A DNA stretch of 24,954 bases, taken from assembly GCF_006345805.1 (NCBI RefSeq), contig NW_021836251.1, positions 1-24,954 of the forward strand. Reading direction: 5' to 3'. Both the position numbers and the translations under genes were made by a program. This DNA is from Octopus sinensis. Its lineage: Eukaryota. Of the stretch, positions 1,343-16,669 are shown in pieces; position 1 is the stretch's first letter; the number at the start of each line of letters is the position of its first letter. The notes beneath the pieces are model-generated. The model did no database searches. It was not told the DNA's origin and was given only the letters and a program-made list of their open reading frames with translations.

Positions 1343-2139
1343 AAAACAATATGTATATATACATATATATATATCAAAACAAAATAAAACAAAACCCTTC
1401 CAACGGATGATAACTTGATCCTCCACAACGAAGATTTGTTTCCTCTACCACCCAGCTGCCGACTTCCATGATAAGGAGCTGGAGAAAAACAATGCAAACT
1501 ATGTAAAGCAATAATTAAATAAATGAAAGAATAGATAAATAATTAAATAAATAAATAAATATGCAAATAAATAAACACTCGACAAGAAAAGTATATAAAT
1601 GTCAAGCTCTTCTAGAAAACAATGTTATATTCACTGGGCTTCGTCAAACTACGGATTGATGGCTGCGTCGTCGCCATTAAATATTGAAACAGGTTAATTG
1701 TTCTGAGGAAAGGCTGCGATTTCACAATGGAAAATGGAGAAGTACACGAGCGTATGCGTGCATCGTTCACAGAGACCAAAATACGATTACATTTATAGTA
1801 ATAATAGACACACGTATATATATATATATATATATGTATTCGCAGTGATAGGTAGACATACAGCACGAGGCACGCAGCTATGTTTGATTACATACAAATA
1901 TGTCTGTATATACCGAATTATGCTTGAATTTATGCATACATACATGCAGACATATACACAGACACTCACACATACTAGGCTAAATACGTGTATACTTGTA
2001 CACATAGAATAGCAAGTTCACAAATGCATACACGTGTATATATACACGTAATCATACCATTACCCAAACTCGTGTGCGTTTGTATATATATGTATATATC
2101 TATACACACACACATATATATATATATATATGCATGTTT

Positions 2140-2260
2140 ATGCATGTATGTACGTATGTATGTATGTATGTATGTATGTATGTATGTATGTATGTATGTG
2201 TGTATGTATGCATGTATGCATGTATGTATGTATAGGTAGATAGGTAGGTAGGTAGGTAGG

Positions 2261-2333
<73 letters not shown>
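2140..2333. repeat. Compound tetranucleotide array (ATGT)n-(AGGT)n-(AGAT)n
   Basis: Read directly from the sequence. Confidence 0.97.
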
Positions 2334-2335
<2 letters not shown>

Positions 2336-2905
2336 GCCACACACACACATACAGATACGCATATAGAAAATATAACTATAGAGTCATAGAAATATATAAC
2401 TACATCAACGGATACACACACACATACACATACACATACATAAATGCAAACGCAATATATACATGCATACATTAGGCACAAACTCATAAAATTTGAAACA
2501 CACACATACACAAACTCATATATACATGCATCTAGAAAAATAAAACGTAATATTAATCACCCCATACCCTACTCACTCACACAAGTACACATGCATACAC
2601 AAACATATATATATTCACTCAGACATATATATAGACTCAAACAACTACAATTGCAACCGCCATCAGCATGCACACATATGCAAAAATGAAATAGAACTTC
2701 GCAGACAGAAGCTCACAATACACACATAACCACACACTCCACAATCACACACACAGACATACACATATATATGCACAAACACAAGATAACGTACACACAG
2801 TCACACAGTTACATACACAAACTCTGTCACACATTATCGCGTAAGGACACAGACAGTCGCACAATCTCACAAATACAAGCATATACTTGCAGTCGCATAA
2901 ATAGA

Positions 2906-2928
2906 GACACACACGCGCGCGCGCGCGC

Positions 2929-2976
<48 letters not shown>

Positions 2977-2990
2977 ACAAACAAACATAC
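2906..2990. repeat. (CA)n with embedded (CG)n run; alternating purine-pyrimidine
   Basis: acacacgcgcgcgcgcgcgcttacacacac… read directly. Confidence 0.9.
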
Positions 2991-3002
2991 ATTCATACAC
3001 AC

Positions 3003-3601
3003 CCATAAAATTCAAAATGGGACAAGAACGCAAAACATCCGGACAGCTAGGTGATACTAAAAGGGACAACAAAACAATCCAGATAGACGATACAAACAAA
3101 ACAAGGACGGGTCATTCGAAGTTTTCTTTCCTCAGTCAAGCACCAGATTATTCCCGCAATTTCGGCTGATTATTCTTGATATTGCTCCAATCTGGCCAGC
3201 TCCAAGGAAAAACTAAGCTAAGAGCATTAGATTCCTTGGAAGAAACCAGCAAATGTATACAAAAACAAGGACGGAAAAAAGGACAATGTTACACAAATAT
3301 AAATACAATAAAAATAAAAACAGGACATAACAACAGGTGTCTTTCGACTAAGGACAATTGAATTAAGCTGGCACGTGTGGAAATGAAGCCTTGCGACAGA
3401 GATACAAATATTTCACAAACACAGGGAAGAATATCGATTTTGCACTAACAGCGGTCAGACCAAGAAAGAAAGAGCAGGCTTGGCCGAACGGCGGTCACGT
3501 GGGAAGAGAAGAGAGAGAAGTAGAAGCAGAGGAACAGAAGAATTAAGGAGGGTCGAGAAAAAATGACAGGAACACAATGAAGTGAAAAGTGGAGGGAAAG
3601 T
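3003..3601 (-). mobile_element. Unclassified interspersed repeat (family X), longest copy
   Basis: Shares gggacaagaacgcaaaacat…gtcattcgaag…gcaatttcggctga with 4392-4516 (opposite strand) and gtcattcgaag…ctccaa…ggccagc…aaggaaaaactaagc…attagatt with 14989-15233. Strand is assigned by assuming the microsatellite-abutting end is 3'. Confidence 0.7.
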
Positions 3602-3621
3602 GTATATATATATATTCATAG

Positions 3622-4075
3622 CATATTCCTAACAGTGAGGTACTAACAAAACGCAACATATCAGGTATTGAAACCATCCTCATCAAAATACAACTTAGAT
3701 GGTTCGATCATCTCTTACGTATGAGTAGCATCAGAATTCTGAAGTAACTTCTCTTTGGTCAATTCTCAACAGAGAAGGTCAGTTGGAAGGCCACTCTTGC
3801 GCTTCAAAGTAAAACTAAAAGGCAATCCGAAGCGATGCAGCATTCCTTTTTCTTCCAGGGAAAACAAAGTATCAGAACGCAAGACCTGGCGCCAGTCCTA
3901 CTTCTCCTCAGTTCAAAGATTTGAGCAAAGTCAACTCCAACGTCGGAACCAACTTTGAGCAAACATAAAGGCACGCTGGCAAAAAGCTGCTTCTCTAAAT
4001 GGAAACCTTACGTGTCATTGTGGCGTTGTAGCGCGAAGCAAAGCAGGTCTTGCCGTCCATTGAAGAAAACACATA
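3622..4075 (+). pseudogene. RTE-clade (BovB-like) non-LTR retrotransposon, 3' end of ORF, 5'-truncated and decayed
   Basis: Manual translation: HIPNSEVL…QLRWFDHLLRM…*LLFGQ (frameshift) RSVGRPLLRFK…W…TCHCGVVARSKAGLAVH*RKH. This matches the RTE post-RT C-terminus (LRWxGHVxRM, GxRxxGRP) and its terminal C2H2-type finger; stops and a frameshift are present. Confidence 0.9.
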
Positions 4076-4149
4076 GTAAATGATCCACAAGCACTCAAAC
4101 AAACGGGTTCCTCAACTTATTCCATTTTATTTTACTGGACCCTTATATA

Positions 4150-4377
4150 TATATAATATGATTTTAAACCTATCATCATTGATTAGAAAAAACCGTTAGT
4201 TGAAAGGACCAATGAAAAGAGACCAATTCCAAATGTATATCTGCCAATGTAAACTGTATGTTTTATACATACAAACTTTATTTTGTTCCATTCACAATCT
4301 TGACTGTACGACGAACGGAAACGTGAAACTCTGAGTAGCAGTTTTTATGATATTCTTTGCAGCTTTAATAATAAATT
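4150..4377 (+). mobile_element. Penelope-like terminal-repeat fragment (family B) with variant HHR
   Basis: 4304-4375 aligns with the minus-strand element at 13313-13382 (ctgt-[a/c]cga[c/t]ga-acg-gnra-cg…ctc-n-gagta-rcag…gctttaa). Ends at a short (TA)n. Confidence 0.6.
4304..4341 (+). ncRNA. Variant minimal type I hammerhead motif (C3>A, U4>C)
   Basis: CTGT|ACGACGA|ACG-GAAA-CGT|GAAA|CTC-T-GAG-T-A|GCAG: stem I 4 bp (one G-U), stem II 3 bp with GNRA loop, near-palindromic stem III, GUA triplet. Confidence 0.55.
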
Positions 4378-4391
4378 GTATATATATATAT

Positions 4392-4516
4392 CAGCCGAAA
4401 TTGCGAGTATGATCCGGTTCTTGACTGAAGATTGAAGGCTTCGAATGCCCCGTCCGTGTTTTTTGTATCGTCTTCTAAATGTTTTGCGTTCTTGTCCCAG
4501 TTTGTATTTTCTTACA
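4392..4516 (+). mobile_element. Family X repeat, 3' fragment
   Basis: Reverse complement aligns with 3005-3170; ends directly in (TA)n at 4517. Confidence 0.75.
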
Positions 4517-4517
4517 T

Positions 4518-4603
<86 letters not shown>

Positions 4604-4717
4604 TATATATATACATGTATATACATATATACATATACATACATATATACATGTACATACATATATATATGTGTGTGTGTATGCATGTATGCATGTATAT
4701 ATATATATATATATATA
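4517..4717. repeat. (TA)n/(TACA)n microsatellite
   Basis: Read directly. Confidence 0.97.
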
Positions 4718-5553
4718 AATGATAGGAGGCGTTCTCGTTAGGGTGACTGATACTAACATGTATGCGTTGTATGTGCTCAAATTGTCGTTCCATTAAAATT
4801 CCAGTTTTAAAAAGCAGTTGAAGTTGTTATATGTGACTGTCTTGCTCAAAACGGCTAGCAGTGGCTTCCCCTTGAGTTAGTACGTATAGGTTAAAGTAGT
4901 GAGGAAATATAAGTAATTAGGCAAGACTTGACAAGAACATTCAATTTAATTTGATTTAATTTGATTTAATTTAGCTACATAGCGAATGATAAAAAATAAT
5001 CTCTAACACCTGTTTCTGGGATATCTCGGGCATTGCAACATCGTGTCGGGCGAAGACTCCATAAGTTGGGTATACCGTCATCGGAGAGATATACGTTAAA
5101 TAGTGGTAGAAAGTTACTCATTAATGATAGTTGTTGTGGTTCATTATGTTGCGGTTCATTATGTCATTATGTCGAAGAACGAGGAGAGATTCAATTAAAT
5201 CCAGTTAGATCAGGTATTCCTTAGGTAAATCTATGACCAGAAAGAATGGTTAGATAGTACACGATGGTGAGAGAAAAAATGGTTAGATAGTACTTCGTAG
5301 TGAGGGAAAATGAACACTGGCAGTTCTAAAGTTGGACAAATACTGAGAGGAAGAATAAATAATACCATTATTATGAATCATGGCAACTACCATTGACGGA
5401 GAAACTTTATTCCACTATCTAACCTAATGTTTCTCAACCTCTTTACCCTTGCGTAACCCTTAACATAGGAAGCCGTGCACACAAAAAAAAATTATATACC
5501 ATATCTTTCTCATATTTTCTTCATTGTAATTAACGTGGTAAATATCATATATA

Positions 5554-6160
5554 CAGGGTGGCCCAAAAGTAGGTTTACAGTTATCACGTAGGAACTTTAA
5601 ATTTCTTTTAAAACATTTTATTACATTTGAATTTCTTATTTTTTTCTTTCTTTTCAGGATCCCTTTTGATCGGAATTCCACATTTCCCCCGCCCTTCTTC
5701 TTCCCAAAAAGAAAAGCTCTACCTTGTATTTTGTCCCTTCTGTGTTCAGCCCTGCGTGGCCAATAAAGAAATCTATCTTACAATCATATTGTTTATGCAC
5801 ATCTTAAACAGACAATGTTTAATCTCTCAGATGCTCAAAATGTCCTCCTTCAACATTGCGACATTCTTCAAACCTCTTCAGAGCACTCTGATACACAGAG
5901 CGGCACAAATTCTGATCTCCATAATTTCAGTGAATGCGTCAGAAATGTAATCTTTTAATTCATTTACTGTTTTAGGATTCTTTTCATAAACGTTGTTCTT
6001 TACAACACCCCCAAAAAAGAAATCCATTGATGTCAAGTCAGGTGAACGTGGTAGCCATTCGATGTTGCCCCGTCTTCCAAACCAACGCTGTGGAAAGGCT
6101 TGGTTAAGGTAGTCTGTTACTGTCAACGCATAACGTAGAAGTGCTCCATTTTGGTGAATA
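5554..6160 (-). mobile_element. Tc1/mariner DD41D (rosa/Visitor-type) transposon, 3' portion with one TIR
   Basis: TA|CAGGGTGGCCCAAAAGTAGGTTTACAGTT terminus at 5552-5582. Translation HQNGA…RWFGRRGNIEWLPRSPDLTSMDFFFGGVVK…GGHFEHLRD*. I count 41 residues between the QDGA-position residue (here N) and the final D. Confidence 0.88.

Positions 6161-12344: not shown

Positions 12345-12436
<92 letters not shown>
12340..12436. repeat. (TA)n microsatellite
   Basis: Read directly. Confidence 0.97.
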
Positions 12437-12438
<2 letters not shown>

Positions 12439-12481
12439 GATAAATATCAAAGTGAGTTATATACAGTAGCGGTAACACATC

Positions 12482-12795
12482 GTGACGTATATTTGCCATC
12501 TCAATATGGCTACCCCTAAGGGTGGATGCTACTGTAGTTTTTAGCCCCAGGAGGACACACTCCTCCCTCGCCGACAACTATGATTGTCACACGCTGACGA
12601 GAGGTCAATACCTCGAAACTCGAGTCCGGTGTATCATAAGTTGAAGACGGGAAGGATGACTTCCCTTTGCAAATACTGACAGAGGACCATAAAGTGTGTC
12701 TATGGCCAGCTGGAGGAGTGTGTCCTCCTGGGGCTAAAAATACAGTAGCATCCACCCTTAGGGGTAGCCATATTGAGATGGCAAATATACGTCAC
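12482..12795 (+). mobile_element. Fold-back element: 85/84-bp inverted arms around a hammerhead-containing spacer (Penelope-like pLTR derivative or HHR-carrying MITE)
   Basis: 12482-12566 equals the reverse complement of 12712-12795 except one G indel. Right end runs into (TA)n. HHR in the 145-bp spacer. Confidence 0.85.
12575..12643 (+). ncRNA. Type I hammerhead ribozyme, canonical core
   Basis: CTGACGA (12594-12600), stem II GAGGT/ACCTC, GAAA (12615-12618), stem III AC-TCGA-GT (palindromic), GUC triplet with predicted cleavage after 12626. Stem I: ACACG/CG(G)TGT plus distal CAACTATGAT/ATCATA(A)GTTG, with a TGTC bulge. Confidence 0.88.
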
Positions 12796-12935
12796 TATAT
12801 ATATATATATATATCTATATATATATATATATATTATATATATATATACATATATACATATATATATACATATATATTATATATATATATATTATATATA
12901 TATGTATATATATACATATATATATATATAATATA

Positions 12936-12966
<31 letters not shown>

Positions 12967-13049: not shown

Positions 13050-13120
13050 AGAATAATGTATACATATATATATATACATATTATATATAATAATATATAT
13101 GTATATATTTGTATATATAC

Positions 13121-13153
<33 letters not shown>

Positions 13154-13224
13154 TATAATATATATATCATATATATATATATATATATATGTATGTATAT
13201 ATATATCATACATATATATATATG

Positions 13225-13286
<62 letters not shown>

Positions 13287-13311
13287 TATATTATATATAT
13301 ATTATATATAT
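12796..13311. repeat. ~0.5-kb degenerate (TA)n array
   Basis: Read directly; almost entirely A/T with scattered TG/CA variants. Confidence 0.97.
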
Positions 13312-13312
13312 A

Positions 13313-13512
13313 CTTTATTTAAAGCAGCAGAAAATTCAACAAAACCTGTTACTCTGAGTTCCCGTTGCCGTTCATCGGACAGTTTTTGCTAGAATCTATC
13401 AAAAACTGTCCGATGAAAGGCAACGGGAACTTTAAATAAAGCATATTACTCTACCACTGGTATTTGAGTACTCTCTTTTCCACCTTGTTTCACATTTATG
13501 TGTTTACTCCGG
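13313..13512. mobile_element. Head-to-head inverted pair of family B terminal repeats (Penelope-like), both 3' ends on (TA)n
   Basis: 13357-13388 versus 13400-13431 is a 31/32 inverted match. Both copies continue into TTTAAATAAAG. The plus copy lacks ~33 nt (CAGAGTAAC…GCTGC). Confidence 0.75.
13346..13382 (-). ncRNA. Variant minimal type I hammerhead motif (U4>C; damaged GAAA/stem II junction)
   Basis: Minus strand CTGT|CCGATGA|ACG-GCAA-CGG|GAA|CTC-A-GAG-T-A|ACAG: perfect 4-bp stem I, GNRA loop, same layout as 4304-4341. Confidence 0.55.
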
Positions 13513-13741
13513 TATATATATTTATATATATTTATATATATGGAGTGGGAGTGTAAAGCCGGTTAGCTGGTTAGTTAAAAATGTAAATATTGTCTTACTT
13601 TCTTCCATGATAAAGTTCTCAAAGCATTTTATTTTTATTTTGAAACTTCAGATTTTTCAATATGCTAGACCACTGGTTTCAAATTGATATTAATCAAATT
13701 AATATTCAATTTTTCAGCCTTATTATTTTTAATTTATATAT

Positions 13742-15413: not shown

Positions 15414-16669
15414 TTAGGCTGTCCCGAAAATAATGGCCGCTCTAAGTGTTTTGTTTTGAAATGCAATTTTTTCAAAGTATTTTAATTATATTTTCGGTGA
15501 ATTTCGACATACTTAATGATTGATGTATGCTCTTTAATAATTTTCTACATATTTCAGACAGAAAACATTCTTGAAGCATAGGTGTCCTTAATCATGAACA
15601 TGAAAAAAAGGACCTTCGCTTACTTTTCTTGCATGAGTTCAAGCTTGGGCATAATGCCTTCCAAACTGCTGCCAATATCTACAGAGCATGGGGAGAGGGT
15701 CCACAAGTGATCGCACAGTACGAAGGTGGTTTCAGAAATTCTGTAGTGATAATGAGATCCTAGAAGATGCAGAAAGTAGAGGACGGTCATGCAGTCTTGA
15801 CAATGAATAATTGAAAGCAATCGTTGAACAAAACCCACGTCAAAGTGTCAGAGAAATGTCTCAGGCACTTGATGTTGGTATTGCAACGGTCTCACGCAAT
15901 CTGTAGATTTGTAAGGTGAAAAATTTCGATAAATGGGTACCGCAAGAGCTCAATGAAAATCAAAATGTTCGGCTCTTTCTGTGGAACACTAATGATCCTT
16001 TTCTTGACCGAATAGTCACTTGTGCTGAAAAGCAGATCCTTTATGATAACTGTAAACGATTAGGTCAATGGCTTGATCATGATGAGTCCCACAAACATTT
16101 CCCAAAGCCAAAGTTGCATCAGCAAAATATTATGGTGACTGTCTGGTGGTCTGCAATTGGTGTTGTCCATTACAGCTTTCTGGAAGCCAATCAGAGCATT
16201 ACAGCAGAGGTTTACTGCAATCAACTCGCCGAAATGCATGGTCACTTGCAAAAATTGAGACCTGCATTGGTGAATCGGATTGGCCCAATTCTGCTCCACG
16301 ATAATGCAAAGCTACATGTTGCAATAATAACGCTGCAGAAACTCACAGACTTGGGATACGAGACTTTACCATATCCTTCATACTCTCCCGATCTTTCACT
16401 CGCTGACTACCATTTTTTAAAGCATCTAAACACGTTTTTAAGTGATAAAACTTTCAGGTCCAAACCAGAGATGGAATCAGCTTTTAAAGATTTCTTAGCA
16501 CCAAAGCCAATAAGTTTTTACCAGCAAGTCATAAATAATCTCGTTGATTGATGGCAGAGACGCATAAATATTCACGGTTCATACTTTGACTAATCAAACT
16601 ATTTCTATTATTAATTTTTCCAGAATAAAATAGTTTCTGAAATTGGCCATTATCTTCGGAACAACCTAA
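15414..16669 (+). mobile_element. Near-full-length mariner (DD34D, Hsmar1/cecropia-like), 1256 bp
   Basis: TA duplications at 15412-13 and 16670-71. TIRs TTAGGCTGTCCCGAAAATAATGGCC / GGCCATTATCTTCGGAACAACCTAA (3 mismatches in 25). Confidence 0.95.
15594..16593 (+). pseudogene. Mariner transposase pseudogene
   Basis: WVPQEL, HDNA…YSPDLSLAD (34 residues between the Ds). First catalytic D mutated (IVTCAEK). Frameshifts near 15605 and 15700, stops near 15810, 15905 and 16550. ORF-track 15916-16551 is the surviving open stretch. Confidence 0.93.

Follow-up and report, generated by a model that had tools for sequence, protein, structure and literature searches.

The stretch of Octopus sinensis DNA analysed here (a small contig of 24,954 bp taken whole, referred to as the window) contains a hammerhead ribozyme (HHR) motif between two inverted arms in a (TA)n microsatellite, and the question is what kind of element this is and how it came to lie there. 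The original prediction described a 314-bp fold-back element with arms of 84 and 85 bp that differ by one indel. These sequence features were found as read: 12482-12566 (85 nt, - strand) and 12712-12795 (84 nt, + strand) are reverse complements but for one 1-nt indel, and (TA)n, read directly, embeds them on both sides, with the left part of the target at 12345-12435 and the right part at 12796-12960. The 314-nt stretch 12482-12795 folds into a single hairpin of -211 kcal/mol (z = -24.7 versus shuffles). The limits and the nature of the element had to be revised, however: the insertion starts at 12436, not 12482, measures 360 bp (12436-12795) since 46 more nt on the left belong to the repeat, and is no TIR element. 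Its parts can be assigned to a 352-bp repeat unit. A 46-nt tail at 12436-12481 (- strand, unit 1-46, 100% match) extends an inverted, 5'-truncated copy at 12482-12566 (- strand, unit 268-352, 100% match) beyond the usual 3' end; this inverted copy is the predicted left arm. It is followed by a 5'-truncated copy with the HHR at 12567-12795 (+ strand, unit 123-352, 97.4% match), which runs to the fixed 3' end ...CGTCAC and whose last 84 nt are the predicted right arm. The 145-nt hairpin "loop" is unit 123-267, the part of the longer copy that is absent from the shorter. We concluded that the window insertion is two 5'-truncated copies of a 352-bp repeat, joined head to head in (TA)n in Penelope style, and the proposed architecture of a Penelope-type repeat with an inverted partial copy was right in this respect.

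The near identity of the arms had also been taken as the mark of a young fold-back copy. Both arms are copies of one very young family, and their likeness gives no date. The private differences of the window copy are mostly indels of 1-2 nt, and on such a small, unplaced contig they may be assembly errors rather than signs of age. A palindromic long-read assembly artefact was considered as the source of the inverted arms and rejected: the palindrome does not reach beyond the element, the two flanks are not alike, and chromosome-scale contigs show the architecture again. When 1 kb of flank from either side was used to search the genome for an empty allele or a paralogous site, the matches were the window itself and dispersed repeats unrelated to it, and nothing else.

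The family was characterized by searching the 2.72-Gb genome assembly. Most matches cover only query positions 86-314, are ~97% identical, and are spaced 352 bp apart in the same orientation. Tandem arrays, which the original prediction had proposed to look for, were among the copies, with a period of 352 bp; the constant arm length that it had also proposed to look for was not found. The unit was derived from the array at locus L029 and is numbered on the HHR strand from the nucleotide just after ...CGTCAC. It is a plain, non-coding tandem repeat with one HHR per unit, a GC content of 42.9% and no ORF (in a trimer, no stop-free stretch exceeds 84 aa), and units within arrays are up to 100% identical. 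The circular monomer has a minimum free energy of -117.4 kcal/mol, compared with -82.3 +/- 5.4 kcal/mol for shuffles (z = -6.4), with 64% of its bases paired. Genome-wide, a 33-nt HHR string has at least 783 copies (with up to 2 mismatches), 3' ends of the form CGTCAC-N-ATATATA number 1,056, junctions from unit to unit or unit to tail (CGTCAC|GATGTGTT) number 1,594, and tail ends number ~180 (235 raw matches, in which some sites were counted twice); each of the reversed control strings gave 0. The 3' ends outnumber the HHRs, and many copies are truncated beyond the HHR, for example the minus-strand arm in the window. Arrays range from a partial unit up to several units, with ~6 units at most among the matches listed. 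About 40% of the unit-352 ends among the matches listed read CGTCAC-G-ATATA and so reach 1-3 nt (G or GAT) into the next unit, which hints at short microhomology between the priming site and the (TA)n target.

We compared 24 independent insertions, the window among them. All 24 lie in a TA-rich microsatellite, and the (TA)n flanks would hide any target-site duplication, for which the loci were also checked. The flanks are unrelated between loci. The 3' ends on the HHR strand are fixed: they fall at unit 352 or 45 to 49 nt into the next unit, save for two odd loci with 3' extensions of 75 and 107 nt that adjoin non-TA sequence; the 5' ends vary from unit 37 to unit 311. Six of the 24 are simple insertions, with as little as one 5'-truncated unit (233 bp, L022) and as much as almost four units (L029), and the other 18 are head to head with both 3' ends outward. 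Because 13 of these 18 were chosen for their resemblance to the window, frequency can be read only from the ~12 loci found through the tandem part, of which 6 are head to head. The unit positions at the junctions differ between loci (for example, 121/273, 273/105, 264/137, 160/231, 304/78 and 311/91), with 0-9 nt of microhomology or some filler bases at the join. Exactly one 45-49-nt tail is present in 15 of the 18 head-to-head insertions. A tail or longer extension was seen in 17/18 head-to-head insertions versus 1/6 simple insertions (Fisher p = 0.0008). Among the HHR sites listed on the two largest contigs, adjacent pairs on opposite strands are head to head in 12 cases and tail to tail in 2. 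The 5' ends cluster at unit 120-123 in six loci (window position 12567, L002, L005, L008, L022 and L024) and at unit 65-66 in two (L019 and L029); the former cluster is partly due to ascertainment bias, and such clusters could mark the 5' end of a transcript or a stop of the reverse transcriptase.

We regard it as likely that 12436-12795 represents a single insertion of a retroelement that is non-autonomous, of the type of the metazoan non-LTR retrozymes, and integrated in the manner of Penelope-like elements (PLEs). Metazoan non-LTR retrozymes are tandem repeats of ~170-400 bp with low GC (below 45-50%) and a type I HHR, and are expressed as circular RNAs that are self-paired (Cervera and de la Pena, 2020; PMC7229834). 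The octopus family shares with them the non-coding tandem unit, whose 352 bp fall in the 170-400 range, the single type I HHR, the GC content and the strongly self-paired monomer. Expression as linear or circular RNA is a property of the published retrozymes, whereas the octopus family is known from genome sequence alone. The strict link to (TA)n, the tail and the inverted-copy signature belong to the octopus family; no mention of them was found in the accessible portions of the retrozyme papers. They are features of PLE insertions, which are highly 5'-truncated, form partial tandems, in many cases have beside their 5' end an inverted copy that is itself 5'-truncated, carry a 30-40-bp tail at one end, and are biased to microsatellites, (TA)n among them (Craig et al., 2021; PMC8557442). 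All five are present in the octopus family, with a tail of 45-49 nt instead of the published 30-40 bp. Opposite-strand HHR pairs 100-700 bp apart have been described in Schistosoma mansoni (Cervera and de la Pena, 2014; PMC4209133). Satellite 2 of newts and salamanders and Sm-alpha of Schistosoma are also repeats with a type I HHR, one whose helix III is short and palindromic and which forms a double hammerhead in tandem transcripts (PMC7229834; PMC4209133), but they differ from the octopus family in sequence, host phylum and copy number (10^5 compared with hundreds to low thousands in octopus).

The alternative that survives best, though still improbable in our view, is a strict Penelope origin, in which the repeat would be the terminal repeat of an autonomous PLE. 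A 5'-truncated copy of that PLE would have left behind a solo pLTR together with a partial pLTR in inverted orientation; a pLTR with an inverted partial pLTR was one of the two versions in the original prediction. The insertion architecture is that of PLEs, HHRs are known to lie in the repeats (pLTRs) of PLEs as they do in the octopus unit (PMC4209133), and PLEs are abundant in this genome, where a GIY-YIG scan gave 4,846 first-look candidates and 147 scored matches. The resident PLEs have a C-terminal GIY-YIG domain and a linker of the form CX4CX2C; they measure ~3.95 kb and, like the retrozyme copies, terminate in (TA)n. Two full-length copies of ~3.95 kb that are 98% identical (L068:1643-5590, and 1843-5797 of the reverse complement of L069) have a 3' end, ...TTTTTTACAA, that adjoins (TA)n, and this PLE is a candidate source of the enzyme. 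PLEs have an RT/GIY-YIG ORF between their repeats, however, and the octopus arrays, with their 352-bp period, have no ORF between units. Neither RT nor GIY-YIG was found in the window or within 1.5 kb of the sampled loci: tblastn with the resident PLE RT-EN protein gave no match in the window or in L002-L037, and the ten longest ORFs of the window contain no RT/EN domain. The expected link to an RT plus GIY-YIG ORF was therefore not borne out, and the pLTR of an autonomous PLE gives way to a non-coding tandem unit. In a blastn comparison with 30 PLE (GIY-YIG) loci the unit matched only L064, where an older retrozyme copy lies beside a truncated PLE in the same microsatellite and is unrelated to the PLE itself. 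The unit also shares no sequence with the one resident PLE family that was compared through its two full-length copies, in which our HHR descriptor detected no canonical HHR; Rfam models on 20 PLE loci returned microsatellite noise and no hammerhead. HHR pairs ~3-4 kb apart, in either subfamily of the repeat, were absent among the matches listed. One GIY-YIG match (G000:C2:75906033-75906296) lies 4.5 kb from a retrozyme copy (75910812-75911041) on the same strand; it is the sole such proximity among the matches listed and may be due to chance or to a shared microsatellite target.

It is very unlikely that the family is ordinary satellite DNA, spread and inverted by unequal crossing-over, fork switching or segmental duplication without an RNA intermediate and with the HHR as a passenger. 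Tandem arrays are present, and a preprint proposes local amplification of retrozyme arrays by unequal crossover (10.64898/2026.07.22.740005). Against this, the family is dispersed, with more than 1,000 ends on at least 19 chromosome-scale contigs and on unplaced contigs, and these ends meet (TA)n at one defined nucleotide. Copies are strictly polar, with the fixed 3' end and variable 5' end on the HHR strand; the arrays among the matches listed are short, and the loci share no flanking sequence.

Equally hard to credit is a hammerhead that is only a chance match or a decayed relic without catalytic ability. Positions 1-45 of the Hammerhead_1 model (Rfam RF00163) could be aligned end to end with 12589-12632 (+ strand), the type I HHR of the window, at 32.1 bits (E = 3e-6 in a 401-nt search). 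The Infernal comparison envisaged in the original prediction thus gave a full-length alignment, but one under the 34-bit gathering score, which is missed by the window HHR as well as by consensus copies (32.2 bits). A default Rfam scan of the whole window yielded zero matches because the window HHR is 2 bits short of that score. All of the core bases, helix II and the palindromic stem III claimed for the motif were confirmed by reading and by the full-length alignment. On the + strand, the core CTGACGA (CUGACGA in RNA) is at 12594-12600, helix II with its loop, GAGGTCAATACCTC, at 12601-12614, GAAA at 12615-12618, and the helix III palindrome ACTCGAGT at 12618-12625; U16.1 falls on 12625 and C17 on 12626, with the predicted cleavage site at 12626/12627. 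The conserved positions C3-U4-G5-A6-N7-G8-A9, G12-A13-A14, A15.1-U16.1 and H17 (non-G) are all as they should be, and the HHR domain with its extended helix I (unit 123-208) takes up 12567-12651 (+ strand) by fold and alignment. Helix II of the window copy is GAGG/CCUC, with a fifth U-A pair possible. A private 1-nt deletion in the 3' strand of helix I (CGGTGT versus CGTGTGT in the family consensus), which no other sampled copy has, disturbs this helix. This deletion and the score below threshold would suit a relic, and the minimal HHRs of PLE type that were assayed cleaved poorly in vitro (PMC4209133).

The family consensus argues otherwise. It has an open helix I of 6 bp (CACACG/CGUGUG), a helix II of 4 bp (GAGG/CCUC) and the helix III palindrome ACUCGAGU, set round the core. 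The usual metazoan type I HHR has a helix I of 6 bp, a helix II of 4 bp, and a helix III of 1-2 bp with a palindromic loop of 2-4 nt that forces dimeric action (PMC4209133). We read ACUCGAGU as fitting this 1-2-bp stem with a 2-4-nt palindromic loop, and in its predicted helices the consensus HHR matches the "canonical" metazoan type I of that work. In folding computations the structure predicted for two HHR segments together is a double hammerhead in which helix III has 8 bp (-35.1 versus 2 x -16.0 kcal/mol). Core and helices are identical in 36 of 45 HHR domains of the young family, and covariation is not visible within it because it is too uniform. An older subfamily with 143 copies in the genome allows a comparison: its helix III is ACCCGGGU where the young one has ACUCGAGU, and its helix II is CGGGU/ACCCA versus GAGGU/ACCUC. 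The young family has U-A at pair 15.3-16.3 and A-U at pair 10.2-11.2, where the older subfamily has C-G and G-C, and position N7 is freely variable. Compensatory change in these two pairs only, one in each of two helices, is a suggestive but thin sign of constraint on the HHR. A full copy of the older subfamily (L064:45-416) is 77% identical and has (TA)n, an inverted arm and a tail as in the young family. The complete core, three helices of standard metazoan dimensions, these compensatory differences, 783 near-identical copies against 0 for the control, and several unrelated HHR repeat families with the same architecture in the genome all speak against chance or decay. Judged by its core and helices, the window HHR is a genuine type I hammerhead; its palindromic helix III is very short, and hammerheads of this sort are expected to work as dimers.

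The weakest reading, also considered in the original prediction, is a MITE or fold-back DNA transposon with 85-bp TIRs that moves by cut-and-paste and carries the HHR as cargo; the window copy alone looks so, with its near-perfect 85-bp inverted arms and AT-rich target, but the comparison of copy sequences refutes it and we give it next to no credence: each copy has its own arm lengths and junction positions, the arms do not form constant termini, what lies outermost is the fixed 3' end of a retro-copied unit, many copies (L018-L022 and L029) have no inverted arm, copies are multimeric and 5'-truncated with one end fixed, and the left boundary lies 46 nt beyond the supposed inverted repeat.

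For the retrozyme-type element with PLE-style integration, a route can be outlined that follows the published retrozyme model in its first steps. Arrays would be transcribed as multimers; the HHRs of neighbouring units, paired via the palindromic helix III, would cleave the RNA after unit 182, releasing 352-nt monomers that a host RNA ligase would perhaps circularise. An uncleaved multimer or a circle would then be reverse-transcribed at a nick in (TA)n by the enzymes of a resident PLE; the anatomy of the insertions and the shared target point to a PLE as the mobilising enzyme. The fixed 3' end, the variable 5' end and the strict polarity argue for target-primed reverse transcription of an RNA with HHR polarity. 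The HHR cut site (unit 182/183) is not the start or end of any copy, and copies are often multimeric, so that the template must have spanned the cut site, as an uncleaved multimer or a re-ligated circle; such a template fits the rolling-circle proposal for retrozymes. The inverted copies terminate in the defined 3' ends of the element and overlap the direct copy in content, from which we infer two priming events, one on each (TA)n strand: both nicked strands of the self-complementary (TA)n would prime cDNA, and the two cDNAs would be joined at their 5' ends. The window copy would be a minimal product of this kind, with 229 nt from one strand and 85 + 46 nt from the other. Snap-back (self-primed) cDNA was considered as the origin of the inversion and rejected, as it would give symmetric junctions and those observed are asymmetric (e.g., unit 268 meets unit 123).

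Double priming at a single target has a reported precedent in L1, for which Ostertag and Kazazian are said to have described "twin priming" as the cause of 5' inversions in 2001. L1 twin priming shares with the octopus insertions the head-to-head cDNAs, the two priming events at one target and the microhomology at the junction. The octopus insertions differ in that each outer end is a defined 3' end of the element itself and the arms overlap in content, which requires a multimeric or circular template or two template molecules. We tentatively propose, as a possibility that is rather less likely than its opposite, that reverse transcription starts at two defined sites of the template, unit 352 and the tail end, which lie 46-49 nt from each other, that head-to-head insertions use one of each, and that both 3'-OH ends of a staggered (TA)n break prime on a multimeric or circular HHR RNA.

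What the window copy itself can do is a separate matter. The original prediction foresaw a self-cleaving hairpin that yields defined small RNAs or circles. The copy has one HHR, inside the loop of an 85-bp hairpin, with no second HHR for a dimer in cis. Because its HHR is single, it could not release a defined monomer or circle alone, and this expectation had to be abandoned. The window copy is most likely an inert, dead-on-arrival insertion and probably has no function of its own.

Other HHR repeats and neighbouring elements were noted in the course of the analysis. At L029:583-965 (G000:C5, ~13458347-13458729), ~200 bp from the main array, there is a second, unrelated fold-back HHR insertion beside (TA)n; its HHR reads CCTGATGAGAAGGCG...CCTTCGAAACATATGTC with the helix III palindrome ACATATGT, and the copy in the other arm has a mutated GAAA. 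A further HHR repeat family with helix III ACAATTGT and a long helix II lies at L068:6165-7571, an HHR repeat at L034:767-1116 and 1351-1700 forms an inverted duplicate that is 99.7% identical, and L036:1351-2132 is a tandem HHR repeat with a period of ~434 bp. Judging from these families, the head-to-head or tandem layout is general for the HHR repeats of this genome. Within the window, a 211-aa ORF at 15916-16551 (+ strand) with a mariner-type Transposase_1 domain (E = 5e-25) is a DNA-transposon remnant unrelated to the HHR insertion. Just right of the (TA)n tract, 13100-13540 is a separate dispersed repeat with at least 150 genomic copies on both strands (77-86% identity), in which our HHR scan found no hammerhead.

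This kind of element is known and well described, and the octopus family is apparently the first to be described in cephalopods. In line with the novelty suggested by the original prediction, no description of such an HHR retrozyme family in cephalopods was found in the searchable literature. The accessible part of the metazoan retrozyme paper makes no mention of cephalopods that we found (PMC7229834). The giant squid genome paper lists 235 Rfam hammerhead hits and nothing further (PMC6962438), and the 2026 repeat annotation of Octopus vulgaris lists PLEs and does not list ribozymes (PMC13282606). For annotators the family calls for caution: single copies resemble MITEs or hairpin genes, and the HHR falls just below the Rfam threshold.

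Retrozymes have been argued to be non-autonomous PLE derivatives from vertebrate data, other animals being left out (10.64898/2026.07.22.740005), and the link between the two has so far drawn mainly on their co-occurrence and on pLTR similarity in vertebrates. The octopus family adds insertion-site evidence from an invertebrate, a non-coding HHR unit with all the structural hallmarks of PLE integration at single-nucleotide resolution. The tail and the inverted pLTRs of PLEs are features that still need a mechanistic explanation (Craig et al., 2021; PMC8557442). If priming at two template sites is true, their origin would be directly testable with a 352-nt template, and fold-back copies such as the one in the window would give rise to hairpin RNAs of at least 85 bp, which might feed RNAi or ADAR editing against the family.
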